Shown: positions 12,545-29,915 of the stretch, one piece after another | Numbering within the stretch: position 1 is the first letter of the stretch | Layout: every line of letters starts with the position of its first letter | Sequence record: NC_025447.1 | DNA: 64,000 bases | Direction: 5' to 3' (one strand) | Made by a program: the position numbers and the translations under genes | Notes under the pieces: generated by a model | Told to the model about the DNA's origin: nothing | The model's database searches: none | The model's input: only the letters and a program-made list of their open reading frames with translations

Positions 12545-12614
12545 TGCACCCGGTGGGCTAGAGTCTTTCTCGACTTGATAAAAATATTATAGCAGTACTG
12601 AATTATAAAAGCAA
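12545..12614 (-). ncRNA. Gene-less promoter unit with two-hairpin CCCACNGGGTGC motif (copy a)
   Basis: TTGCTT-17-TATAAT then GTC-GAGAAA-GAC and CTAGCCCACCGGGTGC. Confidence 0.5.
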
Positions 12615-12684
12615 TAGCCTGGATGTAAAAAGTTTTAATTAATTTGCTTGTCATCCTGGGGCGTACTATGGTACTATGATTCAG

Positions 12685-12727
12685 TACTGAGAAAGTGCTA
12701 TGACCTGCTAAGGTGCGGGAGTGTATC
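12685..12727 (+). ncRNA. Degenerate copy of the two-hairpin motif
   Basis: GAGAAA loop then ACCT-GCTA-AGGT-GC-GGGAGTGTATC; probable promoter TTGTCA at 12648. Confidence 0.35.
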
Positions 12728-12760
12728 CTTTTTAAATTTACTGAATTTTGGGCGTAATTC

Positions 12761-12829
12761 CGCACCCCCTGGGGTATCCGCTTTCTCGCGTCTATGTAGT
12801 AATTATACGCTTTTTTAGTACTGAGTCAA
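12761..12829 (-). ncRNA. Gene-less promoter unit with two-hairpin motif (copy b)
   Basis: TTGACT-16-TATAAT then CGC-GAGAAA-GCG and ACCC-CAGG-GGGT-GC. Confidence 0.5.
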
Positions 12830-13160
12830 TAGCTAAAAACAAAATAATTGAAAATAATTTAACGCGTTTAAACGGCCCGTAAAGCCCTGGTTAGCTGGTG
12901 GCGGTGCAAATGTATAGCTTAGGTGTATTAATGCGTTAGAATGCGATTGAGGACGTTTTACGGGGTATAGTACTGATTCAGTACTGAATAGTAGTACTGA
13001 AAGATTGTTCTCCCTGGATTGTTCCAGTACTCCTATATAGAAAGAAAACTATTTTAAAAGTATTTGTAGAAAGTACTTGCAAAGTATTGGGAAAGGTGTA
13101 GAATGTTTTACATCGAGACGGGGGAAACGCTCCCGTTGCACTTTAAAAGAGATTAAAACG

Positions 13161-13523
13161 ATGGCGACTCAAATCAATACTATCATGCTTAACCTGGTTT
13201 CTTTCCGTGAAGAGATGAAAGATCTTCCCGCTGAGACTGTACGGATTCACATTGCAGCTTATCGGGAATTGATTGCAATGCTGCCGCTTAAGCGTGAACA
13301 GTATGCCGCTACTGCTATGCTCGATGCAATGATCCATAAGATGATCCAGACTGATTTAACGATGGCTTATCAGTACATGGGCGAAATGTTTGCAGTGTAT
13401 AGCAAGCCAGTACCAGGAATGGAAAGTACAGAAGTATTGCACGGCTTAAACTTAAAACAAGATGCATGGGATAATATGCCTCGTTTCCTGGTATGGGCTG
13501 ACAGTGGCAAGATTTACGAATAA
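13161..13523 (+). CDS. Early hypothetical protein
   Basis: Start corrected to MATQIN; own promoter cassette. Confidence 0.75.
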   Translation: MATQINTIMLNLVSFREEMKDLPAETVRIHIAAYRELIAMLPLKREQYAATAMLDAMIHKMIQTDLTMAYQYMGEMFAVYSKPVPGMESTEVLHGLNLKQDAWDNMPRFLVWADSGKIYE

Positions 13524-13617
13524 GTTTAATAAAGTACTTGCAAACTAAGTTTAAAAGCGTATAATGTTTTATATCAGGTGGGGAATAGTTCCCCACTATA
13601 ATAAAGAGGATTTAAAA

Positions 13618-13857
13618 ATGGCTAAATCAAAAATGTTCTTAGGACACAAAAACAAAACTCATTGGAATGTTTCCTTATGGATTAATAATGACGAATCATT
13701 ATACCGGTTGGCCCAGGACTTTATTGCCGCTAACACTAATCGTAATGATGCGGCCCGTCATATGATGCTATTTTTAGAACAGACTGGACAAGATAAAACT
13801 CCAGACGGCTTTAAGTATAGCACTACTGCGATCCGTGCGGCGATGGTTGGAATGTAA
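13618..13857 (+). CDS. Early hypothetical protein
   Basis: Start corrected to MAKSK after GAGGA; own cassette. Confidence 0.75.
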   Translation: MAKSKMFLGHKNKTHWNVSLWINNDESLYRLAQDFIAANTNRNDAARHMMLFLEQTGQDKTPDGFKYSTTAIRAAMVGM

Positions 13858-13940
13858 GAGAATAGATTAAAAGTACTATTGCACGGTGATAGTACTTTAT
13901 AATAAAGTTCTTTTTGTACAACAACGATAGGGGTAACAGC

Positions 13941-14207
13941 ATGACTATTACATATTTTGCAACGCGTGAACTTGCTCGGATTGCCGCACGCCAGGACGGG
14001 GCGACGTTTAAAGATATGGGCGTACAATCTGAACGTGGTAAACGTTGGGCCGTAGTAAAGCAAAGTACAGCCCGATCAATTCAGTACTGGCGAGCGGCTT
14101 TAAAGCGTCCTGATAGTGTATCGCGTCGCGTGGTAGAAATAAAGCACGACCGCAAGGGCAATCGCGTTACCGTGTACCGTACTAAAAAGATTGCAGTACT
14201 TGAATAA
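13941..14207 (+). CDS. Early hypothetical basic protein, paralog of 25998-26393
   Basis: FATRE..R..AR..G.TFKDMG....G.RWAV and HDRKGNRVTVY shared. Confidence 0.8.
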   Translation: MTITYFATRELARIAARQDGATFKDMGVQSERGKRWAVVKQSTARSIQYWRAALKRPDSVSRRVVEIKHDRKGNRVTVYRTKKIAVLE

Positions 14208-14294
14208 AAAGTACTTGCAAACTATGTTTAATGGCGTATAATGTTTTACATCGAGAGCGGGAACACTTCCCGCCTATAACCTGGAGTAATAAAA

Positions 14295-14525
14295 ATGACT
14301 AATATGTATATGACTGAAGTTAAAACCGTAAAAGATACTACCACGAATAAAACTACTTACTTACAGCGGATCTGCGGTGTATGGCAACGTATCAGCAAAT
14401 CAAAGTACTTTAAATTAACATCATATGCCAATCGTTCGGATTCATTCAGTACTGAAATAAAAGGTAATAAAGTACACCAATACGGCACTTATTATTATTA
14501 TAGCCTGGACGCGATTGCAGTATAA
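14295..14525 (+). CDS. Early hypothetical protein
   Basis: GGAG RBS, own cassette. Confidence 0.7.
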   Translation: MTNMYMTEVKTVKDTTTNKTTYLQRICGVWQRISKSKYFKLTSYANRSDSFSTEIKGNKVHQYGTYYYYSLDAIAV

Positions 14526-14555
14526 GTAGTTTACAAATCTTTACAATTGCCAGTA

Positions 14556-14635
14556 TTGACTTATTTTGTCAGTACTGGCATAATGTATCTATTGAAACGA
14601 ACAATTTGGCCCACGGGGTGCGGGAGTGTATCTAT
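14556..14635 (+). ncRNA. Gene-less promoter unit with two-hairpin motif (copy c)
   Basis: TTGACT-17-CATAAT then ATTG-AAACGAA-CAAT and GGCCCACGGGGTGCGGGAGTGTATCTAT. Confidence 0.5.
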
Positions 14636-14665
14636 AGAAAAAGTAGTTTATTACAGTTACAATTG

Positions 14666-14728
14666 TGCACCCGGTGGGTTAGCTGTTGTCATGGGGTATA
14701 TTATGCCAGTACTTGATAATGCTGTCAA
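14666..14728 (-). ncRNA. Gene-less promoter unit with motif (copy d), convergent with copy c
   Basis: TTGACA-17-CATAAT then CTAACCCACCGGGTGC. Confidence 0.5.
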
Positions 14729-14810
14729 TACTTTTTTTTTACTATTCAGTACTGAAAACTATTTTTAAAAAGTACTTGCAAACTATGTTTAAAGGCGTAT
14801 AATGTTTTAC

Positions 14811-14885
14811 ATCAGGACGGGGAATGAAATAAGTAACTCCCTGTTAAGTAGTCCAGGAGTAAGACATACGAAAACCTCCCCTGAT
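14811..14885 (+). ncRNA. Candidate three-way-junction RNA between tandem promoters (copy 1)
   Basis: ATCAGG/CCTGAT, ACGGGGA/TCCCTGT and GGAG/CTCC stems; near-identical copy at 24783-24855. Confidence 0.5.
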
Positions 14886-14953
14886 AAAATAGTTTGACAA
14901 AGATTTATAAAAGCGTATAATACTTACATCAACTACTGAATGAGGGTTACAAA

Positions 14954-15565
14954 ATGAAAACTATCACTACTACTACTTTCGTTATGGCTTTTTCTGAACT
15001 GAACGCAGAACAACAAACGGCGGCTATCGAACTGGTTCGGGATCGGGAACGTGCAAGTGAGGATAATTTCTTTGCTGAGTCAGTACTGGAATACTATAAA
15101 GAAACAGTACTACCAGAATACGGCATAGATGAAGCTGAATTGCAATACAGTGGTTTTTGGTCGCAAGGTGACGGTGCATCAATCAGTACTGACCACGTTG
15201 ACGCTGAGAAGTTTTTACGCAAGGTTAAGGCGTTAACGAAATATCGTTCCATCCGTCACCTGTTGAACGAAGATGATTTGGAAATGAGTGTAGAACGTTC
15301 CCAATCGCGTTATGCACACGAAAACACGGTAGGCGGTTGCGTTGATACTCGCTACACTGATTTAACTGTAAAACAGGCGGCGTTAGCTGAGGAACTGGAA
15401 AATTTACTGACTGACACGATCCGAGAATTATCTTGTAAGCTGTACCGTGATTTAGAAAATGCTTATGAAGACCAGTTTACTACTGAAAACATTGTAGGAC
15501 TGATTGAGGGTAACGAATATCAATTTAATGTTATCGATGGTGTAGTAGAATCTATCGCATATTAA
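14954..15565 (+). CDS. Early hypothetical acidic protein (YSGFWSQGDGA motif)
   Basis: 203 aa ORF, GAGG RBS, own promoter. Confidence 0.8.
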   Translation: MKTITTTTFVMAFSELNAEQQTAAIELVRDRERASEDNFFAESVLEYYKETVLPEYGIDEAELQYSGFWSQGDGASISTDHVDAEKFLRKVKALTKYRSIRHLLNEDDLEMSVERSQSRYAHENTVGGCVDTRYTDLTVKQAALAEELENLLTDTIRELSCKLYRDLENAYEDQFTTENIVGLIEGNEYQFNVIDGVVESIAY

Positions 15566-15623
15566 TTCAGTACTGAATCACTGGCGGGGAATGGTTCCCG
15601 CCTATATCCCAGGAGTAAGAGAA

Positions 15624-15860
15624 ATGATCGAACAAATCAAAACTACAACGCCAAACGTAACGGGTACAGTATCACACTTCATTGGTGACGATTCGCGGGG
15701 CGTTCCTTATTGTGCAGTACATGTAAACAAAAATGGCGACTACTGGCTAACGGTTTACGGTTCTTATTCTTTCGGGCGTAGTGCACACCAAAAGATCCTG
15801 GATAAAGTACAACCAACGGGTAAAAATATCACCGCTGAGATGTTTTATAAAAAGCACTAA
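15624..15860 (+). CDS. Early hypothetical protein
   Basis: Start corrected to MIEQIK after AGGAG. Confidence 0.7.
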   Translation: MIEQIKTTTPNVTGTVSHFIGDDSRGVPYCAVHVNKNGDYWLTVYGSYSFGRSAHQKILDKVQPTGKNITAEMFYKKH

Positions 15861-15945
15861 AAAGTACTTGCAAAGTAATTAGATTAACGTATAATACTTT
15901 ATATCGAGAGCGGGAATAGTTCCCGCCTTTACTGAGGATTATCTA

Positions 15946-16230
15946 ATGGGTAAAGTAATTAACTATACAGTACTAAGCAAGTCATTATCTATTAGCCAGT
16001 GCACCGATGGTTTTTGGCTGTACGATGAAACGCGTGGCATGAATTTAGCTATGCAGGAGAAAACTACTGATGCGGCATATCTTAAAGCACTGGAATACTA
16101 CCAGAAGCGTTTAAAGGAAGTAGAAAACGATTATAATAACCTGAAAGCGAAAGTAGATCATTTCGTCGGTCAATTCATTGACGATGACGAGGACGGGCAC
16201 TACTGCGACCGTTGCGGATCTTACAATTGA
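15946..16230 (+). CDS. Early hypothetical protein with C-terminal CxxC
   Basis: GAGGA RBS; HYCDRCG end. Confidence 0.75.
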   Translation: MGKVINYTVLSKSLSISQCTDGFWLYDETRGMNLAMQEKTTDAAYLKALEYYQKRLKEVENDYNNLKAKVDHFVGQFIDDDEDGHYCDRCGSYN

Positions 16231-16247
16231 GTACTGAGGATTATCTA

Positions 16248-16451
16248 ATGAGTGATTTAATTAAACGTATCAAAGAGCTTGAAGAAAAAGAATTGCAGTT
16301 GATCGGGTTACGGAATAAAGTATTCCATGATTTAGGTGGCTTCATTAATGCCTGGGATAGTGGCGATCCTGATGCGTTACCTGCTAACCGCCAGGCGATG
16401 ATCAATGATGTGCGTGGTGTCTTTGATTATGTTTTAAAGCAATTAAATTAA
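16248..16451 (+). CDS. Early hypothetical protein
   Basis: Start corrected to MSDLIK; same ACTGAGGATTATCTAATG start context as 15946. Confidence 0.75.
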   Translation: MSDLIKRIKELEEKELQLIGLRNKVFHDLGGFINAWDSGDPDALPANRQAMINDVRGVFDYVLKQLN

Positions 16452-16537
16452 AAAAGTACTTGCAATTAGTTTTCAGTACTGTATAATAGTTTACATCAAG
16501 GGGGAAATGGTTCTCCCCACTAATAAGGAGTTTTACA

Positions 16538-16759
16538 ATGGCTAATATCACTACTCTTTCCCAGCTTGAAGCACTGGTTAAATCTATGCGGGAACATGCC
16601 GACAATATCGGCGTAGAAGATCCGGCTGTATGTTTTTGCGACGAAATAAATGATGATACGCTCGTCATTGCAGAAGTACAAGACGTTTCTAACTATTCAT
16701 CGCGTTACACTGGCGGCGTAGCAAAGAAAGGTGATTTTTGTTTATATCTTACTAAGTAA
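16538..16759 (+). CDS. Early hypothetical protein
   Basis: TAAGGAG RBS, own cassette. Confidence 0.75.
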   Translation: MANITTLSQLEALVKSMREHADNIGVEDPAVCFCDEINDDTLVIAEVQDVSNYSSRYTGGVAKKGDFCLYLTK

Positions 16760-16766
16760 TAACCAG

Positions 16767-16792
16767 GGGGATCAAACGATCCCCTTTATTTT
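16767..16792 (+). terminator. Intrinsic terminator
   Basis: GGGGATC-AAAC-GATCCCC-TTTATTTT. Confidence 0.75.
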
Positions 16793-16823
16793 GCAGTACT
16801 GAATCATTTAATAGACGGATCTA

Positions 16824-16893
16824 TGCACCCTGTGGGTTAGTGACTATCTCGTCTTTATGTAGGTATTATGCCAGTACTGGATGCAGTTGTCAA
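16824..16893 (-). ncRNA. Gene-less promoter unit with two-hairpin motif (copy e)
   Basis: TTGACA-17-CATAAT then GAC-GAGATA-GTC-ACTAACCCACAGGGTGC. Confidence 0.5.
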
Positions 16894-17005
16894 GACTTTT
16901 TTTTCAAATACTTTTATATTAAAGTACTTGATAATAGTTTTTAAACGCGTATAATGTTTTACATCTAATCGGGAATACTCCCTAGTACTAACAAAGGATA
17001 TACAA

Positions 17006-17305
17006 ATGAAAACTGCAATCATCGCCCTGGCTTTATCTGTTTCCTCTTTCGCTGTTAACGCTTCCGTTGATGTACAGAAAGAAAAATTCATTCAGTGCAC
17101 TGTTGCAATGACTAACGAGGAAACGGCTGAGATCGTTACCAAATCCCTGGAACTGGCCCCTGCAATGTTTGCTAATGGCCCGTACCATGAAGAAGATGAT
17201 CAGGGTAGCACGACCATCTATTACGATGCAAAAAGTAAACGCGGTTCTGTCACTGTAATGGATACAGAGAAAGTTACATTCACTGGCGTAATTAATTGTT
17301 TATAA
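17006..17305 (+). CDS. Early protein with Sec signal peptide
   Basis: MKTAIIALALSVSSFAVNA cleavage-like N-terminus; AAGGA RBS. Confidence 0.75.
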   Translation: MKTAIIALALSVSSFAVNASVDVQKEKFIQCTVAMTNEETAEIVTKSLELAPAMFANGPYHEEDDQGSTTIYYDAKSKRGSVTVMDTEKVTFTGVINCL

Positions 17306-17322
17306 TATAGTACTGAATCACT

Positions 17323-17350
17323 AGCCCACTATAAGGAGTGGGCTTTTTTT
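17323..17350 (+). terminator. Intrinsic terminator
   Basis: AGCCCAC-loop-GTGGGCT-TTTTTT. Confidence 0.85.
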
Positions 17351-17543
17351 ATTGTAGGATTGTAGTACTGGTATACTTTGAAAATAGTTTTAAAAAAGTA
17401 GTTGACATTACCAGGGAAAAGCGTAGAATGTATTACATCAAGACGGGGAACATTAAGTAGACCGCCAGTAAGTCGAATGAAAAACTGGACACGTCAAACA
17501 AACTTTGATAAACTAACTTAAACTTTAATTGAGGATTTATAAA

Positions 17544-18026
17544 ATGGCTAATGTAAAATCATTTCTGAAAGCACTGATTTCTAACGATACTGTCATTGCT
17601 GCTGAATTGCTGGCTGACCTGGATAATGATACCATGAAAGCAGTACGCAACAATTTTAACATTGCTTACAGTGAAGCGAAAGAACTACAAGCCAAAAAGG
17701 TAGCAGAACTGGAAGAACAGAAAAAAGCCCGTGAAGCAGAACTGCAAGCAACAATAGAAAGTATTCAGGCGGCGGTGTCTGGTTTAGATCTGGAAGTGGT
17801 TATTGAAATGGCACATAAAGCCCTGGCGGTTAAGTACGGTGAAGATAAGCCGGAATCTAAGCCTAAAAAATGGATTCAAGAACGTGTTACGGTTGTCCTT
17901 GATAACGGGGAAGAACATTTGATTCCTGTACGCGGTAACTGCATTGCGGTAGTACTGGATGCTATCAAAGAAAGCGGTATGACTCGCGAGGAATGGATCG
18001 AATCTCACCGCAAAATTGAAGCATAA
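17544..18026 (+). CDS. H-NS/StpA-like protein with divergent DNA-binding motif
   Basis: Start corrected to MANVKS. Charged coiled-coil N-half; C-terminus VVLDNGEEHLIPVRGNCIAVVLDAIKESGMTREEWI aligns by eye with H-NS [36 protein letters not shown]. Confidence 0.6.
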   Translation: MANVKSFLKALISNDTVIAAELLADLDNDTMKAVRNNFNIAYSEAKELQAKKVAELEEQKKAREAELQATIESIQAAVSGLDLEVVIEMAHKALAVKYGEDKPESKPKKWIQERVTVVLDNGEEHLIPVRGNCIAVVLDAIKESGMTREEWIESHRKIEA

Positions 18027-18047
18027 CATTTAAAGTACTGAATCACT

Positions 18048-18073
18048 AGCCCACTTATACAGTGGGCTTTTTT
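18048..18073 (+). terminator. Intrinsic terminator
   Basis: AGCCCACT-TATAC-AGTGGGCT-TTTTT. Confidence 0.85.
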
Positions 18074-18300
18074 GTGTCTATAGTATTCCATGCCGTCAGC
18101 ACCTCATAGAATCGATTCTAACGCATTAAACTGATTATCTGATGCATCGCCCTAGCTGGTGGAGTTAAGGCCGTTAGAATGCGATTGAGAGCGTTTAAAG
18201 TATTTTGCAAAAAGTAATAAAAAGTACTTGCACGATTCAGAGATTAGCGTATAATGTTTTACATCAAGGCGAAACACCTTAACTAACTGAGGATATAAAG

Positions 18301-18453
18301 ATGAATACTTATGAACTGGATTGTTTCACGTTACAAGTAATGTCAGTATGCAGCAAGAAAGATTGGTCATCAAAGGAATTTAAAGCAGTTATTGCGTGTG
18401 CAAAACACGGCAAGACTATCAATGAAACGGCATCAATCATTGATAAACTTTAA
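18301..18453 (+). CDS. Small early protein (50 aa, not in track)
   Basis: GAGGA RBS, own promoter; MNTYELDCF...; resembles 22156-22299. Confidence 0.65.
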   Translation: MNTYELDCFTLQVMSVCSKKDWSSKEFKAVIACAKHGKTINETASIIDKL

Positions 18454-18522
18454 AAAATAGTTTGACAATAGTTTTAAGTACTGTATAATATTTTACATCA
18501 ACTACTGAGAAGGATTTAAAAA

Positions 18523-18750
18523 ATGGCTATCATCATCACTTACGTATCTGGCACTACTGGCACTTCTAGCACTGTTGCAGTACTGACCAACAAGAAAGGT
18601 GCGGAACTTCATTCTGCAATGAATACCTGGGCGGTGAATGAGTTCGGTCAGTGGGCTAGTGTAGAATACATTGAAACCTATCAAGTGCCGTCTATTAGCT
18701 TAACTGATTTAGGTGTAGATCGTATCCTTTGCCTGGATGAATTAAACTAA
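18523..18750 (+). CDS. Early hypothetical protein
   Basis: AAGGA RBS, own promoter. Confidence 0.75.
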   Translation: MAIIITYVSGTTGTSSTVAVLTNKKGAELHSAMNTWAVNEFGQWASVEYIETYQVPSISLTDLGVDRILCLDELN

Positions 18751-18835
18751 AAAGTACTTGCAAAGTAAATCGGATAAAGTATAATACATTACATCAAGGG
18801 GAGAAATGATTCTCCCCACTAAGAGGAAACTAAAA

Positions 18836-18979
18836 ATGAAAACTTGTCAATGTGGTAAAAAATCTATCACTGGTTTGAAACGGGGCGTTGCTCTTTGTCA
18901 GTATCACTATAACGCTCAAGTATGGGGTAAAGAGTGGGCAGACCAGGTGGAAGCTGTAAAGAAAGCAAAAAGTAAGTAA
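18836..18979 (+). CDS. Small early Cys-containing protein (47 aa, not in track)
   Basis: GAGGA RBS, own cassette; MKTCQCGKK...LCQYH. Confidence 0.65.
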   Translation: MKTCQCGKKSITGLKRGVALCQYHYNAQVWGKEWADQVEAVKKAKSK

Positions 18980-19060
18980 AATTATTATCACAGTACTATT
19001 GACATAGTTTGATAGTACTGGCATAATAGATTTTATCAAGACAACTAAGAGGAAACAATA

Positions 19061-19273
19061 ATGGCTATCATTACTAAAATCAAAGTTAACAAATCACTGG
19101 TTAAACTTGAACAAGTGAAAGCAGGTTATAAAGTATCGTGGTGCGGTATGTATCGGATGTTCACCGATATAGACAATGCAATCAAGTACTACACTGACAC
19201 CGTTGCCTCATTCGTTCGTTCTGATGTAGTACTGGCAGTACATGCACATAAAGCAGCGAAAGAAAGTAAGTAA
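19061..19273 (+). CDS. Early hypothetical protein, similar to 21877-22056
   Basis: GAGGA RBS; MAII start and Y.VS.....(F/Y)...D.A...Y pattern shared. Confidence 0.75.
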   Translation: MAIITKIKVNKSLVKLEQVKAGYKVSWCGMYRMFTDIDNAIKYYTDTVASFVRSDVVLAVHAHKAAKESK

Positions 19274-19364
19274 AAATATTATCACAGTACTATTGATATA
19301 GTTTGATAGTACTGGCATAATAGATTTTATCAAGACAACACATATTAATTTAAGGAATACTAAA

Positions 19365-19688: not shown

Positions 19689-19768
19689 TTAGCTTTACTT
19701 TATGCAGATACTTTTATATAGTGTCTGCATAGGGGAAAGAAATTAAATTAACTTAAGAGGATCGTATA

Positions 19769-22785: not shown

Positions 22786-22932
22786 TTGAAATTATATAGA
22801 AAGTACAAAGGCGTTACCATTCGTGGTAATGCTGGGGAATATGTAGTATCATACGGTTTGAATAAAATCAGTACTAGTAGTATTATTGTAGCATTACAGT
22901 ACTATAGTATTTTTATAATGAGGTTAAAATAA
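22786..22932 (+). CDS. Possible 48 aa protein (TTG start)
   Basis: YVVSYG shared with 21877; stop overlaps next ATG (TAATG). Confidence 0.4.
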   Translation: MKLYRKYKGVTIRGNAGEYVVSYGLNKISTSSIIVALQYYSIFIMRLK

Positions 22933-23189
22933 TGGCTGTTGGATTCGCGAAGGACGGGGCCGAGCAAGACGAGATTAACGCAGTGATTCAGGCCGCTGTA
23001 AACCACGCTAGAACGCAAATTAACGCACAAATAGAATCACTGATACATTGCCTCGACTGCGGCGATAAAATCCCTGAGAATCGCCGCCTGGCCGTTAAGG
23101 GGTGTAAGTACTGCATCACTTGCCAGGCTGATCATGATAGCATATTCAAACGCAATCCCCGTAATTGTTGGCATAGATCTATGAGATAA
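22932..23189 (+). CDS. DksA/TraR C4 zinc-finger protein, YbiI-like
   Basis: CLDCGDKIPENRRLAVKGCKYCITCQ; N-terminus MAVGFAKDGA..DEIN resembles E. coli YbiI MASGWANDDA..EQIN. Confidence 0.85.
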   Translation: MAVGFAKDGAEQDEINAVIQAAVNHARTQINAQIESLIHCLDCGDKIPENRRLAVKGCKYCITCQADHDSIFKRNPRNCWHRSMR

Positions 23190-23252
23190 AAAGTATTGAC
23201 AGTACTGTTAGTTAGTGTATAATATTTTATATCTTAACTGAGGATTGAAATC

Positions 23253-23609
23253 ATGGGTATACAACATATCACGCGTACTACAGACAATGGTGAGATCACT
23301 GGCTATCAAGTACAAGGCAAAGTAGCACAATTGCAGTACTGGTTTGTTAAACGTGGCATTGTTGCACCGGATCTTGATTATGATCGTGTAGCGTTTATTG
23401 ATTCTCTTTATGTTGATCCCGATAATCGCGGTAACGGTGAAGGTACTGAGTTAATGAATGCCTTTATTGATGCCGCCGATGATTCAGATTGTATCATCTT
23501 AGAATGCGATACTGGAGAAGATAACGAGTTTAATCTTAAAGAATGGTATGAAGGTTTTGGATTTGAAGTACTGATTAACTGCGAATATCCTATAATGATT
23601 TTATCCTAG
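23253..23609 (+). CDS. GNAT-family N-acetyltransferase
   Basis: Motif A IDSLYVDPDNRGNGEGTELM; motif B LKEWYEGFGF. Confidence 0.8.
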   Translation: MGIQHITRTTDNGEITGYQVQGKVAQLQYWFVKRGIVAPDLDYDRVAFIDSLYVDPDNRGNGEGTELMNAFIDAADDSDCIILECDTGEDNEFNLKEWYEGFGFEVLINCEYPIMILS

Positions 23610-23688
23610 TACTTGCAATTAGTTTTAAGTACTGTATAATAGTTTACATGAAGGGGAGAATAGTTCTCCCCACTACAAGGAAAGACAA

Positions 23689-23877
23689 ATGCAAAACTTA
23701 TCAAGTATTTTAGTACAAGATGATTTCGGTAATCCTGGAAGTGCTATCATCGTTCGGGGCAATAAGGCAACGTTTGTTATTGCTGGTGGACCTGTACAGC
23801 GTAGCATTAAAAACAATGCAGTTACAATCAATAATGTTCGCTATCGCTTAGATAAAGAATTGATTCATAAACTTTAA
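23689..23877 (+). CDS. Early hypothetical protein
   Basis: Own cassette, AAGGA RBS. Confidence 0.7.
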   Translation: MQNLSSILVQDDFGNPGSAIIVRGNKATFVIAGGPVQRSIKNNAVTINNVRYRLDKELIHKL

Positions 23878-23962
23878 AAAAGTATTTGACAAAGCATTGT
23901 AGTACTGTATAATAGTTTACATGAAGGGGAGAAATGATTCTCCCCACTAAGAGGAAAGAAAC

Positions 23963-24175
23963 ATGCAAGGTCAACTAATCGTTCGTAAATGGTCTGATAC
24001 TAACGAAAAACCGTGGGATGTTCAATATATCGGACCGGACGGTGTTTCACGTTATCAACCTGGCGTAACGCATAGTACTGAGCAATATGCCGCCGCTCAC
24101 CGCGAACGCCTGTTAGAATCTATGAAACAGGGATTCTGTGAAAAATTCATTCAAGATCATTGGCTGAAAGATTAA
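23963..24175 (+). CDS. Early hypothetical protein
   Basis: Own cassette, GAGGA RBS. Confidence 0.75.
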   Translation: MQGQLIVRKWSDTNEKPWDVQYIGPDGVSRYQPGVTHSTEQYAAAHRERLLESMKQGFCEKFIQDHWLKD

Positions 24176-24194
24176 TATATAAGGAGTACAGCTT

Positions 24195-24287
24195 ATGCAA
24201 ATGAATCCGATGATTGTTGTGTTAGCTGTACTTATGATCATTCATGCCATCGTAGAAGTACTAACACAATCAGGAGTAATACAATGA
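24195..24287 (+). CDS. 30 aa hydrophobic peptide
   Basis: AAGGAG RBS; MIVVLAVLMIIHAIVEVL. Confidence 0.55.
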   Translation: MQMNPMIVVLAVLMIIHAIVEVLTQSGVIQ

Positions 24288-24454
24288 TCCAAGTAGAATT
24301 ATCAGTACTGAAAGATCTGTTTTATCGGTTAGGCACTACTGGCGAATACCCTAAAGGGGATACTGCTAAACTATACATTGCATTGGATGTATGGCAACGT
24401 AATGAACTGGCTAACGCCTGGCGTAAAGGTAAATCAGAGGGGATTGCAGCATGA
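24284..24454 (+). CDS. Small hypothetical protein (56 aa)
   Basis: AGGAG RBS, ATGA overlap. Confidence 0.6.
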   Translation: MIQVELSVLKDLFYRLGTTGEYPKGDTAKLYIALDVWQRNELANAWRKGKSEGIAA

Positions 24455-24600
24455 AAGAATTTTTATTCGAAGTAGTGTTCCAGGGCGTAGGAAGTAACCA
24501 ACTGATTCGATCAAGTGGTTACAATGTTAACCAGGCATGGAATAACATTAAACAAATGTACCCGAACGCTATCACATATCGCAACCCAAAACAAGTTTAA
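24451..24600 (+). CDS. Small hypothetical protein (49 aa)
   Basis: GAGG RBS, ATGA overlap. Confidence 0.55.
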   Translation: MKEFLFEVVFQGVGSNQLIRSSGYNVNQAWNNIKQMYPNAITYRNPKQV

Positions 24601-24609
24601 AAAGAATAA

Positions 24610-24700
24610 AAAAAGGGATTGACTCCGGTCAGTCCCTTTGCTATTATATACGCATAGACAAAAACTAGCCCACAGGGTGCATAAATGTATCTATTATATG
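24610..24700 (+). ncRNA. Terminator-overlapped promoter plus motif (copy h)
   Basis: AAAGGGATTGAC-TCCG-GTCAGTCCCTTT; TTGACT-17-TATTAT; CTAGCCCACAGGGTGC. Confidence 0.5.
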
Positions 24701-24782
24701 CTGGTGGCTAGTACTATCAAGTACTGAAAACTATTTTTAAAAAGTACTTGCATTGTACTTAGAATCAAGTATAATGTTTTAC

Positions 24783-24855
24783 ATCAGGACGGGGAACGAA
24801 ACAAGTAACCCCGTTAAGTAGTCCAGGAGTAAGACATACGAAAACCTCCCCTGAT
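24783..24855 (+). ncRNA. Candidate three-way-junction RNA (copy 2)
   Basis: Near-identical to 14811-14885; variable arm keeps ACGGGG/CCCCGT pairing. Confidence 0.5.
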
Positions 24856-24921
24856 AAAATAGTTTGACAATAGAAATTAAACAAGTATAATACTTACATC
24901 AACCACAAAGAGGAATACAAA

Positions 24922-25122
24922 ATGAAACATTTTACTTTCGGTGTAGTAGGCTTTACAGTATCCAGCGGCGTTTATAAATCAGAACGCGGTGCTAAAAATG
25001 CAGCAAGTCGGGCGTATGGTTCACAGCGTGACTTACAGGTCGGTTATATTAGTAACATTAATAACATGTTTATTCCTGTTTCACAGCGTAAAGCGGGTAA
25101 CATGAAATGGGAAACAATTTGA
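24922..25122 (+). CDS. Early hypothetical protein
   Basis: GAGGA RBS, own promoter. Confidence 0.75.
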   Translation: MKHFTFGVVGFTVSSGVYKSERGAKNAASRAYGSQRDLQVGYISNINNMFIPVSQRKAGNMKWETI

Positions 25123-25211
25123 TAAAATAGTTTGACAATAGTTTTTAGTACTGTATAATATTTTACATCAAGTGGGGAATAGTTCCCCACCTAACAAAGA
25201 GAGAAATTAAA

Positions 25212-25487
25212 ATGCGGATTCTACTGACAGCTAACGAAATCGAGCAAGTACTGACTACTAACCTGGAAGACTGGAAACGTGATGCAGATATCCAGGCGGT
25301 GCAATGGCTCAATGATAAGTTAACGCCGGATGATTTAAGTAAGATTGTAGATCCACAATTCTATGAAGATATTCACGACACGGCTTTAAGCGTCGAGGAT
25401 GTACTTGATAAGCACTACATTGATATTGATTTGCAGGTTTACGGTCGTAAAAACTTTATCACTATTCACGACATTTATAATAATTAA
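25212..25487 (+). CDS. Early hypothetical acidic protein
   Basis: Own cassette. Confidence 0.7.
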   Translation: MRILLTANEIEQVLTTNLEDWKRDADIQAVQWLNDKLTPDDLSKIVDPQFYEDIHDTALSVEDVLDKHYIDIDLQVYGRKNFITIHDIYNN

Positions 25488-25574
25488 GTATTGACAAAGT
25501 ATCTTAGTACTGTATAATAGTTTACATCAAGGCAGGGGAATGGTTCCCCTCCTAACTAAAAGAGAGAAATTAAA

Positions 25575-25898
25575 ATGACTATGATCCTTACCCAGAAAGT
25601 AGAAATGAAAATTGTAACTTCCTTTGACATTAAAGTCAATCGGTGGACTGATAGCCACGGCAATACTTACCACTCATGCTACGTGTCTGCATTGATTGGT
25701 GACCGCTGGGAAGACCTGGGACATGAAACCTTTACTTACGGTTACGGTACACAAGGCGAATACACGGGCTTGGAGATCATTAAAGAAACTGTAATAGGTT
25801 TCAACCCGAAAGAGAAAGTACTACACAGAATTGAGGATGAGATCAACAAAGAAATTACAGTTCGTTACTACGATGTAAAACGTAAGAAAGATATGTAA
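25575..25898 (+). CDS. Early hypothetical protein, paralog of 19365-19688
   Basis: WTDSHGNTYHSC motif. Confidence 0.8.
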   Translation: MTMILTQKVEMKIVTSFDIKVNRWTDSHGNTYHSCYVSALIGDRWEDLGHETFTYGYGTQGEYTGLEIIKETVIGFNPKEKVLHRIEDEINKEITVRYYDVKRKKDM

Positions 25899-25997
25899 TA
25901 GAATCCATTTAAAGTACTATTTGACATTGCCCAGATAGTACTTTATAATAGACTCTAACTTGTAGTACTAATTAACTTAACTAATAGGATGTACACC

Positions 25998-26393
25998 ATG
26001 ATTACTAAATTCTTCGCTACCCGTGAACAAGCTCGCATCGTTGCCCGTGAAGAAGGTGAAACATTTAAAGACATGGGCAAAGATGCACCGAAAGGACAAC
26101 GCTGGGCGGTACAGTTCAAAGAGATCTCTGATATTGTGAATTCACCTGAGCCTGTACTTACAGCAGCAGAACTAAAGCAAGCTCAAGAACTGGCTGAAGT
26201 ACTGAACGCTCAAGATGACTTTTTGAAAGGTTCTGATATTGAAGTTACAGTTAACGCAAATGCATGGACTCACGCGGATCACCTGGCAAACCTTAAGCGT
26301 CCAAGTGAACTGATTCGTAACCAGAAAGAGATCCGTCATGACCGTAAAGGAAACCGTGTAACAGTATACAGTAAACGCCGCCAGGTTATCTAA
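25998..26393 (+). CDS. Early protein, paralog of 13941-14207 with a longer middle segment
   Basis: Shared N- and C-terminal blocks; same palindromic AAAGTACTAT..ATAGTACTTT promoter type. Confidence 0.8.
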   Translation: MITKFFATREQARIVAREEGETFKDMGKDAPKGQRWAVQFKEISDIVNSPEPVLTAAELKQAQELAEVLNAQDDFLKGSDIEVTVNANAWTHADHLANLKRPSELIRNQKEIRHDRKGNRVTVYSKRRQVI

Positions 26394-26416
26394 TAACTTT
26401 GCAGTACTAACAACAC

Positions 26417-26441
26417 GGCGGGAATATTTCCCGCCTTTTTT
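26417..26441 (+). terminator. Intrinsic terminator built from the same hairpin as cassette leaders
   Basis: GGCGGGAA-TAT-TTCCCGCC-TTTTTT. Confidence 0.8.
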
Positions 26442-26455
26442 ATAGGATAAACAAA

Positions 26456-26710
26456 ATGATTAAGGTTCAACTATCAAACGATAATGTATTACGGGTACAC
26501 TATAAAGCTCCACAGAGAATCATCACAAAGGCCGTACAGCTTGCTAATGAGTTTATTAATGGTAGTCTATTGCCTAGGAAGTTAAGCAACGGGAAACTAC
26601 GTGTAATCGACGTAGACACTAACAATAGAATAGTGATCGAGAGTACTGGAAAAATTAATCTATATGAACACCAACAATACAATAAAAAAATAAAACTAAT
26701 ATCACGTTGA
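26456..26710 (+). CDS. Hypothetical protein
   Basis: AGGA RBS. Confidence 0.65.
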   Translation: MIKVQLSNDNVLRVHYKAPQRIITKAVQLANEFINGSLLPRKLSNGKLRVIDVDTNNRIVIESTGKINLYEHQQYNKKIKLISR

Positions 26711-26763
26711 CAGTACTCAAATGTTTTAGTATTATGTATCTATACCAACACAGGAGAAACAAA

Positions 26764-26982
26764 ATGAAATTATCTAAAATCGAAAAGAAAACTATTGATG
26801 AAGCAGTGAAGCACGGTTATACCTTTCGTAATGATTCACACTTCACCAGTTTTCAACAGGGAAACCGTACCATCAAAAAACTCATTGATAAAGGTTTACT
26901 CACTAAGGTTGATAACGGGAACGGTGTAGAATATCAACCGACAGAAGACGCATTATCACTAAAGAAATATTCTATTATCTAA
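26764..26982 (+). CDS. Early hypothetical protein
   Basis: Start corrected after AGGAG; promoter block 26707-26766 duplicated at 26983-27042. Confidence 0.7.
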   Translation: MKLSKIEKKTIDEAVKHGYTFRNDSHFTSFQQGNRTIKKLIDKGLLTKVDNGNGVEYQPTEDALSLKKYSII

Positions 26983-27039
26983 TTGACAGTACTCAAATGT
27001 TTTAGTACTATGTACGCATACCAACACGGGGAAAACAAA

Positions 27040-27282
27040 ATGATTACTTTAGAAAAACGTATCAAAGAGACTACAACGCTGGTGGAACTGTTAACCGTTC
27101 TTAAATGCCGGGTAACTCCATTCAGTACACCGGACTTTATCAACATGGTGGACGTTAACGGTCGCTATCGTATTGCGGTCGAACAAGGTACGGCAAAAGT
27201 ATTCAGTACTAAAAATACGCGTGAAGTATTCCACGCAGTTCAAGTAAAAAAAGTAGTTGCCATTGATAGTAAAGTACTGTAA
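27040..27282 (+). CDS. Early hypothetical protein
   Basis: Start corrected; duplicated promoter block upstream. Confidence 0.7.
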   Translation: MITLEKRIKETTTLVELLTVLKCRVTPFSTPDFINMVDVNGRYRIAVEQGTAKVFSTKNTREVFHAVQVKKVVAIDSKVL

Positions 27283-27313
27283 TATAGTTTCATTAACTCA
27301 AGGAGTCAACACA

Positions 27314-27898
27314 ATGCGTAACTATACTAAATTCATCCGTTCACTTCATGCAATGGAAACCAACAAAGAGATCCTTTCAGCTTGTCGGTTAGCTGGACTG
27401 GAGATCGTCGGTGCGGGTTCTTCCCGTATTGTATTCGCTTTAAATGATCGGTTAGTGATTAAGGTCGCGAATTGTGATGCGGGTGTAGAACAAAATGAAA
27501 CTGAATGTAAGGTATGGAATTTTTTAGATTATGACCGTCCGCACCTTAAACAGTTCTTTGCCAAGGTGCATATGCATTTATGCGATCCTGATAATCTGCT
27601 TATTGTTATGGATCGTTTGAGTACTGCAAGCAAAGGCAGTGTAAAGCACGTAACCGCATGTAATGAGTTAAAGTACAATATTAAACGTAACACTATTGAA
27701 CGCCATCACCATTTCGCTGATGCTCTCAATCACGTTGATGATACATTATCCACACTAACGATAAGAGATATCAGAAAACAGAATATCGGCCAGGATCGCA
27801 ACGGCTTGATTAAAGTACTTGATTACGGTTTAACCCGCAATATCTGGAATCAGTACTATAAAAAACGTGATGTTAACGCGATAACTATAACACGATAA
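27314..27898 (+). CDS. Protein-kinase-like (PKL/APH fold) enzyme
   Basis: Gly loop GAGSSRIV, VIK lysine, QNETE helix C, catalytic RDIRKQN, metal-binding DYG; AAGGAG RBS. Confidence 0.75.
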   Translation: MRNYTKFIRSLHAMETNKEILSACRLAGLEIVGAGSSRIVFALNDRLVIKVANCDAGVEQNETECKVWNFLDYDRPHLKQFFAKVHMHLCDPDNLLIVMDRLSTASKGSVKHVTACNELKYNIKRNTIERHHHFADALNHVDDTLSTLTIRDIRKQNIGQDRNGLIKVLDYGLTRNIWNQYYKKRDVNAITITR

Positions 27899-27907
27899 AA
27901 AAGATTA

Positions 27908-28000
27908 AAAAAGGGATTGACTCCAGTCAGTCCCTTTGCTATTATATATTCATTGAGAGATAACTCACTGACCCATAGGGTGCGGAAGTGTATCTATTAT
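27908..28000 (+). ncRNA. Terminator-overlapped promoter plus two-hairpin motif (copy i)
   Basis: AAAGGGATTGAC-TCCA-GTCAGTCCCTTT; TGAG-AGATAA-CTCA; CTGACCCATAGGGTGC. Confidence 0.5.
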
Positions 28001-28122
28001 ATAAGTATTCAGTACTGAAAACTATTTTATAAAAAGTACTTGCAAACTATCTCAATGAGCGTATAATGTTTTATATCGAGAGGGGGAAATGGTTCTCCCT
28101 GGTACTAAAAGGAATCAAGACG

Positions 28123-28344
28123 ATGGCTACTATGACCTGCGTTCACGCTTCAAATCTTCTGAATGATGCAGCATTTAAAGCAGGTGAAGAATATCAATGC
28201 TATCGGGATGAAAATAAAAAAGTTTTCGTCGTTGATGCTAACGGTTTCCATATTGAATTGCAATCCGGTTTCACTGGCATTGATGGTAAATCTGTATGGG
28301 GCGTCCAGGACGATAACGGCACATATCATTTTAAACGTAATTAA
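28123..28344 (+). CDS. Early hypothetical protein
   Basis: Start corrected to MATMTC after AAGGA. Confidence 0.7.
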   Translation: MATMTCVHASNLLNDAAFKAGEEYQCYRDENKKVFVVDANGFHIELQSGFTGIDGKSVWGVQDDNGTYHFKRN

Positions 28345-28428
28345 GTATTGACAAAGTATATCAGTACTGTATAATAGTTTACATCAAGGGGAGAATAGTT
28401 CTCCCCACCAATAAAAGGAAACAAAATT

Positions 28429-28701
28429 ATGTCCAGCTACTCCGCTACTATGATTATTAAAGATATGAACGGTAATCCTACTTCTGCTGGTGGATCATTT
28501 GGTAACATTAATTTAGATGGGCGGTTATCAATTGAATCAGCCATCAATGCAGCGAAAGAAGTTTTTAAGAATGAATGTACTGTAAGCAAGCTGGATTATA
28601 TGGGCTTCGCTATCGAGAAAACTAATCGTTTTGTGGACTACAAAAAACCACTGATGATTGATACTAACCTGAAAGCAAACGAAGTGGAATACTTATTATG
28701 A
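28429..28701 (+). CDS. Early hypothetical protein
   Basis: Own cassette, AAGGA RBS. Confidence 0.75.
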   Translation: MSSYSATMIIKDMNGNPTSAGGSFGNINLDGRLSIESAINAAKEVFKNECTVSKLDYMGFAIEKTNRFVDYKKPLMIDTNLKANEVEYLL

Positions 28702-28889
28702 CAGTAGAAGAAGTTAAAAAAGTACTGGCAGTACTACGCTATCATAATCATTGTAAGGTGAAGAATGATCCTGATTATCTTGATTCATCGCTGGAAGAGG
28801 ATACACTACAAGCAATAAGCCATATGCAAAAAATGCTTAAGCGTATGACCGAAAAGAACAGGCCGGACTATATCGGAAATAAAATTTAA
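28698..28889 (+). CDS. Hypothetical protein
   Basis: ATGA overlap. Confidence 0.65.
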   Translation: MTVEEVKKVLAVLRYHNHCKVKNDPDYLDSSLEEDTLQAISHMQKMLKRMTEKNRPDYIGNKI

Positions 28890-28972
28890 AAAGTACTTGC
28901 ATTGTAAGTAAAACAAAGTATAATGTTTTACATAGGGGGAGATATCCTCCCCCACTAATAAGGAGTACTAAA

Positions 28973-29197
28973 ATGGCTAACTTTGATGAACTGATGCGGG
29001 AAGTAGCTACCCTGGCAGAAGAGAAGAAATCATTTGATTCTATCTATAACACCGCTTACAGTGATTCAGTACTGGCATGTACTCAGGATCAAAAAGATGA
29101 ACTGATCGCCACCTATCATGAAGCATGGAAGTATTACCGCCAATGGGAGAAAGAAGAAAGCGAGTCTACCATCAACGGCATCAATAATCTAATCTAA
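28973..29197 (+). CDS. Early hypothetical protein
   Basis: TAAGGAG RBS, own cassette. Confidence 0.75.
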   Translation: MANFDELMREVATLAEEKKSFDSIYNTAYSDSVLACTQDQKDELIATYHEAWKYYRQWEKEESESTINGINNLI

Positions 29198-29271
29198 AGT
29201 TTTATTTCAGTACTATTGACAATGCGTGATAGTACTGATGTGATAACTTTACTAACTAAAGGGGAAACATA

Positions 29272-29529
29272 ATGGAACAGTTCACACAATATCGGGTAAA
29301 TCCTCAAGCTATGGCCTACGTAGAAGACCATAAAACGTTACCAGTACTAACACCAATTAAAGGCCATATCTATCGTGCTATGCAGTGGAATAACGCCTAT
29401 AATGGCTATAAAGCGGTATCCGCTGCAATGTACTTAGGGGATGGCGAATGGTTTGATCCAAATAATCCTGGTGCACTCGATAGTACTGAAAAAATGACAT
29501 GGGCCGACTATATCGAAGATATCTCATAA
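29272..29529 (+). CDS. Hypothetical protein
   Basis: GGGGA RBS. Confidence 0.7.
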   Translation: MEQFTQYRVNPQAMAYVEDHKTLPVLTPIKGHIYRAMQWNNAYNGYKAVSAAMYLGDGEWFDPNNPGALDSTEKMTWADYIEDIS

Positions 29530-29617
29530 AAACTATTTGACAGTACTACAAGATAATGTATAATGTTTTACATAGAGCGGGGGAATAGTTCTCCCGCACC
29601 TTTAGGAGTAAAACATT

Positions 29618-29818
29618 ATGTCAATCGCTAACGAATTGGTTGCAGTACTGAATGAAGCAAAAGCCAACTGCATCGATGTACAGATCAAAGAGCTTGGCAA
29701 TGGCTTGATCGGCTGTACTTGTACAGTGCAAACGGCTACCGATTATCGGGAAGTGGAATCACTCGAATCACTGGTACGGTATATTAAAATCCTGGTAGAA
29801 GATTGGAGAATCATCTAA
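29618..29818 (+). CDS. Early hypothetical protein
   Basis: AGGAG RBS, own cassette. Confidence 0.7.
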   Translation: MSIANELVAVLNEAKANCIDVQIKELGNGLIGCTCTVQTATDYREVESLESLVRYIKILVEDWRII

Positions 29819-29831
29819 CAAAAAAGAATAA

Positions 29832-29915
29832 AAAAAGGGATTGACTCCGGTCAGTCCCTTTGCTATTATATACGCATAGACAAAAACTAGCCCACTGGGT
29901 GCAGAGAAGTATCTG
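29832..29915 (+). ncRNA. Terminator-overlapped promoter plus motif (copy j)
   Basis: Near-identical to copy h; CTAGCCCACTGGGTGC. Confidence 0.5.

Follow-up and report, generated by a model that had tools for sequence, protein, structure and literature searches.

A promoter-plus-RNA module that is selected at the RNA level is present 11 times in the early region of Escherichia phage 121Q (NC_025447, genus Asteriusvirus). Each copy, here called a unit, couples a sigma70 promoter to a conserved RNA domain of ~55 nt. The units fold on the sense strand, are restricted to the direct terminal repeat (DTR) of the phage, are conserved across genera and, where they stand alone, are followed by a terminator. 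All positions given here refer to the window, the whole 64-kb stretch that was analysed, in which a window position equals the record position minus 124000. Our favoured explanation, which we put forward tentatively, is that each unit is a self-contained early unit whose RNA is itself the product, made in abundance and acting in trans. The RNA family appears to be an undescribed phage non-coding RNA or leader, and there is a fair chance that its mechanism is new.

The termini of phage fEgEco12 were verified with PhageTerm and restriction digests, and its DTR measures ~21 kb (PMC13070987); in Sharanji, a close relative of 121Q, the DTR is 20,668 bp. Position 1 of fEgEco12 aligns to window position 11459 and the end of its DTR (20993) to ~31638, and by this alignment we place the DTR of 121Q at 11459..31638 (~20.2 kb). 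All 11 units lie inside it. The DTR is the early region of 121Q: it contains 13 perfect TTGACA-N16/17-TATAAT promoters, compared to none in the next 20 kb, and 106 promoter-like sites, compared to 69.5 +/- 8.4 in shuffles, while the next 20 kb is not enriched. The annotated genes of the DTR are all small, all on the plus strand and mostly hypothetical. A tRNA scan was negative.

The 11 copies listed in a preliminary description of this DNA were all recovered. The core CTAGCCCACAGGGTGC, at three mismatches or fewer, occurs nine times (0.06 expected by chance), on the minus strand at 12546, 14667 and 16825 and on the plus strand at 14606, 20976, 22660, 24665, 27968 and 29887. Ten copies in the window, including 12761 on the minus strand, were identified by a covariance model based on 16 units, to which a search with the filters off added 12701 on the plus strand. 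The same model gave zero copies in the 64-kb window beyond the DTR. Moreover, in the IMG/VR copy of the full 348.5-kb 121Q genome, all 7 matches to a strict pattern fell within window positions 12545-32593. The promoter statistics that follow use 61 units from six phages, namely 121Q and five sampled relatives, whose hosts are E. coli, Klebsiella, Pectobacterium and Yersinia.

Selection at the RNA level is seen in the covariation of the paired positions. Hairpin 1, with a stem of 3-5 bp, occurs with 17 distinct inner stems; each of its inner three pairs shows 3-5 pair types, and 0-4 of ~61 sequences are unpaired there. In total, 95% of the cells pair, compared to 44-54% after the partners were slid, and a model-free, position-specific test found hairpin 1 in 49 of 58 units, compared to 21.1 +/- 3.3 in shuffles (maximum 31). 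Both helices together contain 48 G-U pairs and no A-C pair, so the folding strand is the sense strand, transcribed from the attached promoter. The preliminary description had argued for an RNA-level function from orientation and compensatory changes in the window. The variants on which it relied are all present (GTC/GAC, CGC/GCG, GAC/GTC twice and TGAG/CTCA twice in hairpin 1; GCCC/GGGT, ACCC/GGGT and ACCT/AGGT in hairpin 2), and across the six phages the covariation is far stronger.

The loops of hairpin 1 are purine-rich and 6-8 nt long (GAGAAA, GCGAAA, AGAUAA, AGAACAA). The hairpin is missing in 9 of 58 units, which retain a similar A-rich tract (for example AUAGACAAAAA); the window copies at 14667 (minus strand), 24665 and 29887 (plus strand) belong to this group and have an A-rich unpaired leader instead. 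Since these nine stemless units keep the tract, the important part appears to be the purine-rich motif, which the stem would serve to display. Hairpin 2 (4 bp) is nearly invariant as RCCC-AYN-GGGU, its innermost C-G pair being replaced twice by U-A and twice by U-G. A further series is given by the copy at 12701, which has ACCT/AGGT in 121Q and, in its fEgEco12 ortholog, ACCT/GGGT, a U-G intermediate. The GC that follows hairpin 2 does not vary within the window, and the GTATCT block noticed earlier is real.

The description of a two-hairpin RNA was correct for both hairpins and incomplete, as the 3' arm of hairpin 2 has a second partner. This arm can pair alternatively with the GTATCT block (GGGUG:YRYYY), which excludes hairpin 2. 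In one register 96.9% of the cells pair and 44 of 52 sequences form all five pairs; in other registers only 0-3 sequences do so. At the five positions of this alternative helix, the two commonest bases are those able to pair with the invariant partner. On the comparative evidence, the conserved GTATCT block is explained by its pairing with GGGUG, a previously unnoticed feature. Predicted energies are -3.6 to -3.9 kcal/mol for hairpin 2 and 0.6 to -7.6 for the alternative helix, and in this model the domain would have two near-isoenergetic states. Two other pairings were tried and rejected: a third hairpin in the GTATCT block (alignment columns 88-92 with 97-101) consists mostly of G-A or A-C cells, and a pseudoknot pairing the GTATCT block with the loop of hairpin 1 fits AGAUA-type loops alone.

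The domain is coupled to its promoter in every unit. As the preliminary description had claimed for orientation and spacing, all window copies lie 20-27 nt 3' of a sigma70 -10 hexamer and in its orientation, with a -35 hexamer at 16-18 bp. A sigma70 promoter is present in 61 of 61 units, scoring 8-12 of 12 and, in 52 units, 10 or more. In 59 of the 61, there are 2-4 nt from the end of the -10 to the start of the covariance model, and a TGn extended -10 is found in 42. As a class, the unit promoters stand apart: their spacer is 17 bp long and their -10 extended, compared to the 16-bp spacer of the gene promoters. Note that units that have hairpin 1 and units that lack it differ by 5 nt in how far the core lies from the predicted start site, which argues against a phased DNA site. 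No conserved open reading frame (ORF) or ribosome-binding site (RBS) was seen 3' of the units, which match a stand-alone small RNA gene in having their own promoter and no coding potential.

The family is conserved in distant relatives. By blastn, a unit gave full-length matches of 76-83% identity in K64-1, RaK2, CBB, fENko-Kae01, 7t3 and fHe-Yen9-03, among others, phages that share only ~23-30% genome nucleotide identity with the 121Q genus, and these matches lie in the DTR wherever the termini are annotated. The RNA part alone, compared by blastn to 50,697 phage records, matched 49 of them, all Rak2-like jumbo phages; BLAST places the family also in Salmonella and Erwinia phages of the group. 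Searching a covariance model against other phages, a check named in the preliminary description, gave 86 matches in relatives with the pairing conserved, at 8-12 units per DTR region in each of five relatives. Beyond the DTR, the model found no copy in 15 kb of CBB or in 4.4 kb of fENko-Kae01, and it had no match in the PA5oct DTR piece that holds ncRNA001 and ncRNA002. Small IMG/VR contigs with the strict pattern had no covariance-model match and were discarded as chance matches.

In support of the earlier claim that the multi-copy element is undescribed, Rfam 15 gave nothing at the gathering threshold for the whole region or single units (the core is unmatched even at E <= 10), and the searchable literature contains neither a description of the element nor a transcriptome for any family member. 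By blastn, no match to a unit was found among 5,426 E. coli genomes; the element is therefore no copy of an RNA of the host. A 16-mer scan of 185,579 species genomes gave, among the matches listed, mostly scattered ones and no conserved enterobacterial locus. In Chloroflexota genomes, a multi-copy element has as its core the identical 16-mer CTAACCCACAGGGTGC, followed by TYCGCRAAG (L108 1601-1690 and at least ~40 other loci, in Anaerolineae and other Chloroflexota metagenome-assembled genomes). There it sits in the apical loop of variable-stem hairpins, including an RNA-like locus of ~250 nt with long terminal pairing, and Rfam gives no match for it. This could be coincidence or a shared RNA module.

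The units occur in three settings. Lone minus-strand units number 8 in the six phages, Unit 6 of the window and seven in relatives. In 8 of 8, a terminator hairpin with a U-rich tail follows on the unit's own strand 10-25 nt after the domain; these terminators are clear in most cases and weak in the window's own. The predicted RNAs are ~92-106 nt long and contain no ORF, and there is no gene on that strand. By these predictions, the lone units are gene-less units made up of a promoter, an RNA of ~100 nt and a terminator, so that the earlier claim of gene-less units holds for them. Unit 6 (16757..16893, minus strand, 69.9 bits) has its -35 TTGACA at 16893-16888 and its -10 CATAAT at 16870-16865, hairpin 1 GAC-GAGATA-GTC, hairpin 2 at 16837-16827 and GC at 16826-16825; its RNA, of ~100 nt, is predicted to start at ~16859 and to end at a bidirectional terminator hairpin (16784-16767), with no gene on its strand. 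Also on the minus strand, Unit 1 (12522..12614, 60.3 bits) has -35 TTGCTT at 12614-12609, -10 TATAAT at 12591-12586, hairpin 1 GTC-GAGAAA-GAC (12574-12563), hairpin 2 GCCC-ACC-GGGT (12558-12548) and GC at 12547-12546. Its alternative helix, GGGUG:CGCCC, is predicted to be strong (-7.6, compared to -3.9 kcal/mol for hairpin 2).

Convergent pairs are the second setting. Nine pairs, from four named phages and one IMG/VR contig, have exactly 45 nt between their GC dinucleotides, and five further pairs have spacers of 56, 63 or 67 nt; in several relatives the extra bases are a Fur-box-like palindrome. A transcript crossing a convergent pair would form a stem of 13-19 bp (z -2.5 to -6.5). The window contains two pairs, 12701/12761 and 14606/14667 (plus/minus strand), both with the 45-nt spacer. 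In the first, the degenerate Unit 2 (12648..12740, plus strand, 13.7 bits, E 0.02) has -35 TTGTCA, -10 TACTAT (12672-12677), hairpin 1 ACT-GAGAA-AGT, hairpin 2 ACCT-GCTA-AGGT (12703-12714) and GC at 12715-12716. Its partner, Unit 3 (12738..12829, minus strand, 32.6 bits), has -35 TTGACT (12829-12824), -10 TATAAT (12807-12802), hairpin 1 CGC-GAGAAA-GCG, hairpin 2 ACCC(C)-AG-(G)GGGT (12775-12764) and GC at 12763-12762. In the second pair, Unit 4 (14556..14645, plus strand) has -35 TTGACT (14556-14561), -10 CATAAT (14579-14584), hairpin 1 ATTG-AAACGAA-CAAT, hairpin 2 at 14609-14619 and GC at 14620-14621, and Unit 5 (14643..14728, minus strand) has -35 TTGACA (14728-14723), -10 CATAAT (14705-14700), the leader AUGACAACAG in place of hairpin 1, hairpin 2 ACCC-ACC-GGGT (14679-14669) and GC at 14668-14667. 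Read-through RNA across this pair would form a long stem (z = -3.55). The annotated ORF that overlies it (121Q gene 270, 14583-14768) is probably spurious, and CBB_7 (L003 3793-3966), annotated over a convergent pair of CBB, is probably no gene either.

The third setting is that of the plus-strand units at 20976, 22660, 24665, 27968 and 29887. In 4 of these 5, the -35 lies within the 12-bp terminator hairpin of the upstream gene and the next gene has its own consensus promoter 60-130 bp further on; 3' of the unit at 22660 there is a -10 with a poor -35. No terminator was seen between any of the five units and the next gene, and their transcripts may therefore run into it. The earlier statements that the units are gene-less and that no RBS-ATG follows them are thus qualified for the plus-strand copies; the absence of an RBS-ATG otherwise holds.

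Unit 7 (20918..21015, 68.8 bits) has its -35 TTGACT (20925-20930) inside the terminator hairpin at 20918-20945, -10 TATTAT (20948-20953), hairpin 1 TGAG-AGATAG-CTCA, hairpin 2 at 20979-20989 and GC at 20990-20991; the next gene's promoter is at 21058-21085. Just 5' of this unit, gene 287 (20778-20915) encodes a 45-aa, very basic, lysine-rich peptide. Unit 8 (22607..22699) has -35 TTGACA (22607-22612), CCAGTACTGG in the spacer, -10 CATAAT (22630-22635), hairpin 1 GAC(G)-AGAA-(C)GTC, hairpin 2 ACCC-ATA-GGGT (22663-22673) and GC at 22674-22675, and is followed by just TATAAT (22745-22750) and then genes 293 and 294 (DksA-like). Unit 9 (24612..24704) combines a terminator-promoter hairpin (24612-24639; -35 at 24619-24624, -10 at 24642-24647) with the leader AUAGACAAAAA in place of hairpin 1, hairpin 2 at 24668-24678, GC at 24679-24680 and a Chi site at 24700. 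In Unit 10 (27910..28007, 73.9 bits), the hairpin at 27910-27937 (-35 at 27917-27922, -10 at 27940-27945) precedes hairpin 1 TGAG-AGATAA-CTCA, hairpin 2 ACCC-ATA-GGGT (27971-27981) and GC at 27982-27983, and the next gene's promoter is at 28040-28067. Unit 11 (29834..29926) has a terminator-promoter hairpin at 29834-29861 (-35 at 29841-29846, -10 at 29864-29869), no hairpin 1, hairpin 2 GCCC-ACT-GGGT (29890-29900), GC at 29901-29902 and a Chi site at 29947. The four compact terminator-promoter fusions (Units 7, 9, 10 and 11) share a 12-bp stem with a tetraloop, TTGACT as the -35 in the 5' arm and TATTAT as the -10 in the T-rich tail. This design, with the GACTTCGGTC hairpin, is kept in CBB, RaK2, fENko-Kae01 and fHe-Yen9-03.

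We favour a trans-acting RNA on two grounds: their orientation relative to genes does not matter to the units, and the lone units are complete small genes with terminators. Host sigma70 RNA polymerase would read the units from the terminal repeat that enters first. The RNA would start ~7 nt beyond the -10 hexamer, with the A of a conserved CAT, and open directly with the conserved domain: the purine motif (GAGAAA, GCGAAA or AGAACAA), usually presented in the loop of a 3-5 bp hairpin whose stem is free to vary; then CUA; then the near-invariant RCCC-AYN-GGGU hairpin and GC; and finally the YRYYY block, which may pair with GGGUG in place of CCC. With ~10 units per repeat and two repeats per genome, the RNA dosage would be high. 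The RNA would most likely bind a conserved protein partner in trans, as a decoy, cofactor or sponge. Lone minus-strand units would stop at bidirectional terminators and yield RNAs of ~100 nt, convergent pairs would pack two units tail to tail, and plus-strand units would provide the same domain as the 5' end of longer transcripts. A bolder version, which we consider rather doubtful, is that a two-state RNA of ~55 nt, representing a new class of phage RNA and made from ~20 dedicated promoters per genome on the first-entering DNA, captures or reprograms a conserved cell component (for example RNA polymerase, Hfq, the degradosome or a defence sensor), with the convergent pairs supplying an 'anti-core' that sets the active state.

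Several points weigh against a trans-acting product. The start sites and RNA ends are predictions, and the protein partner is one that we infer. The plus-strand units, 5 of the 11, lack a terminator, and a discrete short RNA would need processing or a roadblock there. Action in trans explains neither the exact 45-nt convergent spacing nor the fusion of plus-strand units to an upstream terminator; the layout resembles a deliberate restart and would fit a 5' element that acts in cis. Finally, single units fold no more stably than shuffles (z +0.4 to -1.9). Single-sequence folding is statistically powerless for stems this short, and the case for structure thus rests on the comparison of units and not on energy.

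A cis-acting element of this kind is the alternative that we take most seriously, an idea already raised in the preliminary description. In it, the nascent domain would remain attached to the RNA polymerase by which it was made, either by itself or together with a phage protein on the purine loop, and would suppress pausing or termination as put and nut do, and transcription started at a unit would pass the many terminators of the repeat into delayed-early genes. We consider it unlikely, and less likely than a trans-acting RNA, although still a real rival. It gives the best account of the terminator-then-restart layout: with their -35 in the hairpin of the terminator behind which they sit, the plus-strand units would, by stop-and-restart, attach the element to each new transcript. 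Moreover, the domain starts at +3 to +6 of strong early transcripts, as HK022 putL does at +3 of the PL transcript, the separate class of unit promoters fits this role, and hairpin 1 has a purine-rich loop, as has boxB. However, hairpins of 3-5 and 4 bp compare poorly to the ~70 nt of long bulged stems in put RNA, a boxA-like sequence (YGCUCUU(U)A) occurs in 0 of 61 units, and the blastn and Rfam searches described above gave no lambdoid homology, only Rak2-like jumbo phages being matched. In addition, 4 of the 11 units face away from all genes, the convergent pairs would have no role, and the lone units retain a working-looking terminator on their own strand that a resistant polymerase would ignore. 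The small hairpins, the absence of boxA and of homology, and the terminators behind lone units together led us to disfavour the put-like reading. The domain could also be an mRNA 5' leader, either a stabiliser (a terminal hairpin that counters 5'-end-dependent decay), a processing signal or a two-state attenuator that determines whether transcription goes on into the next gene. Hairpin 1 does begin ~3-6 nt from the predicted 5' end, two mutually exclusive helices resemble an attenuator, and genes follow the plus-strand units with no intervening terminator. We nevertheless find this improbable: for the four minus-strand units of the window, and for every convergent pair, there is nothing that could be stabilised or regulated, the majority of downstream genes come with a consensus promoter of their own, hairpin 1 is missing in 9 of 58 units, and no U tract follows the alternative helix.

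The remaining alternatives place the function in the DNA or deny it. If the act of transcription is what matters, the units could be R-loop primers or origins (as in T4), recombination starters, collision barriers or insulators. They lie strictly within the terminal repeat, their early RNA is rich in purines and in G, with AT-rich DNA beyond it, and several genera have convergent pairs ~1 and 3 kb from the left end; the repeat is full of co-oriented Chi sites, two of them just after units, and the Fur-box-like palindromes within the pairs of some relatives could be roadblocks. Against this, selected intramolecular RNA pairing, in which G-U is tolerated and A-C never occurs, is unexpected for an RNA hybridised to DNA, the association of Chi with units is not significant, and no origin is known for these phages; we give this explanation little chance. 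That the units are selfish or decaying promoter cassettes, functionless and spread by duplication or gene conversion, is very improbable and already disfavoured by the comparative data. The copies are many, and orthologous positions of 121Q and fEgEco12 differ in hairpin 1, which suggests exchange between copies. However, the core is nearly invariant across genera despite their low genome identity, the covariation preserves pairing, and subtypes and positions are kept across genera: in 121Q, CBB and fHe-Yen9-03, for instance, the plus member of a pair combines an 18-bp spacer with TACTAT as its -10.

The early programme of the Rak2/121Q/CBB giant phages is almost wholly "hypothetical", and the unit RNA, better conserved than the early proteins, is a concrete and testable component of it. 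Phages of this group are under development against E. coli, Klebsiella and plant pathogens. Should the RNA titrate or rewire a host factor, takeover or anti-defence would have a new kind of RNA-based tool; should it act in cis, the put and nut systems would have a much smaller relative in virulent phages. The covariance model is ready for genome annotation and flags ORFs such as 121Q gene 270 as probably spurious.

Other features of the repeat were recorded. The 11-mer CACTAGCCCAC is also the 5' arm of two gene terminators (17319-17344 and 18044-18068), both preceded by AGTACTGAAT. The preliminary description had noticed this sharing, which holds, and had seen in it a hint of a link to termination control, which is unsupported. 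The 11-mer also occurs antisense within gene 279 (18651-18659, minus strand), so the mRNA of this gene has an 11-nt perfect complement to the unit core. Chi sites (GCTGGTGG) number 9, all on the plus strand and all in the DTR (12046, 12894, 18155, 22321, 23782, 24700, 27078, 28486 and 29947), with none in the other 44 kb of the window; in each of five relatives the count per repeat is 6-12, and almost no Chi site lies elsewhere. At 12034-12053, ~575 bp from the left end, there is an inverted Chi pair (CCACCAGC...GCTGGTGG). This suggests that halting RecBCD and promoting recombination are what the repeat is built for.

The palindrome AGTACT occurs 264 times in the whole window (21.6 expected), at 6.7/kb in the repeat and 2.9/kb outside, and is enriched within coding sequence too (examples at 11797, 11837, 12594 and 22622). 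Many -35 hexamers have it immediately 5' (AGTACTTGACA); it also occurs within promoter spacers (CCAGTACTGGCATAAT) and ~24-35 nt beyond most units, and a DNA-binding factor could recognise it. The leftmost 1.7 kb of the repeat (11459-13160) is non-coding and holds three units, several promoters in both directions, CTAGAYGG and CTGGATGG repeats (~12220-12360) and two copies of AATTTTGGGCGTAA (12528, 12744); it may contain packaging or end-recognition signals. In the Klebsiella phages, strong Fur-box-like palindromes that agree with GATAATGATAATCATTATC at 16-17 of 19 positions are clustered in the left part of the repeat, and the Yersinia phage has weaker ones, several lying exactly between the two units of a convergent pair (L004 775, 2342, 7309; L007 1599, 2117, 2951; L005 344). 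In 121Q none rose above background, and the Fur box, found only in the Klebsiella and Yersinia relatives, was rejected as a part of the unit. Finally, genes 268 (13941-14207) and 304 (25998-26393) share the N-terminal motif FATRE.ARI.AR..G.TFKDMG...G.RWAV and are thus paralogs.

The units resemble several known systems in part. The HK022 put RNA, of ~70 nt, folds into two long bulged stems and a triplex and makes RNA polymerase ignore terminators, an effect that depends on the beta' zinc-binding domain; there are two copies per genome, both upstream of genes (PMC9378689). Like the units, put is a nascent RNA made by host sigma70 polymerase right after an early promoter, starting at ~+3, with two stems and a need for the correct orientation. 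In contrast, the units have much shorter hairpins, occur in ~10-12 copies, several of them facing away from genes, and retain terminators behind the lone copies. No putL or putR homology was found by blastn in the 50,697 phage records or by Rfam, HK022 itself not having been scanned with the model. With lambda nut the units share a small purine-loop hairpin near early promoters in which the stem varies and the loop is kept; the unit loop has 6-8 nt, whereas nut boxB has a GNRA-like pentaloop, and the conserved partner sequence of the units lies 3' of the hairpin. Among the small basic proteins of the DTR, a scan for an arginine-rich N-like protein gave no clear candidate.

Lambda oop is a small phage RNA with its own promoter and terminator. 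In PA5oct, ncRNA001 and ncRNA002 lie in the DTR and are highly transcribed (PMC7318152). As occurs with the lone units, oop and the PA5oct RNAs are short, non-coding and equipped with a promoter and an intrinsic terminator, those of PA5oct also sharing the location; however, they are single-copy and of unrelated sequence, whereas the unit domain is repeated ~10-fold, including in convergent pairs. ToxI-like repeats and the anti-CRISPR RNAs that resemble CRISPR repeats are likewise many short structured early RNAs that could titrate a protein, but these are tandem, made from one promoter and mimics of host RNA, whereas the units are dispersed and have their own promoters. Finally, gene-less promoters serve replication in T4 (oriF and oriG, each a promoter with an unwinding element) and in T7 (phiOL and phiOR, near the genome ends). 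The units are similar gene-less promoters near genome ends, followed by AT-rich DNA; the T4 and T7 elements have 1-2 copies and no conserved covarying RNA fold, whereas the units combine such a fold with 10-12 copies.

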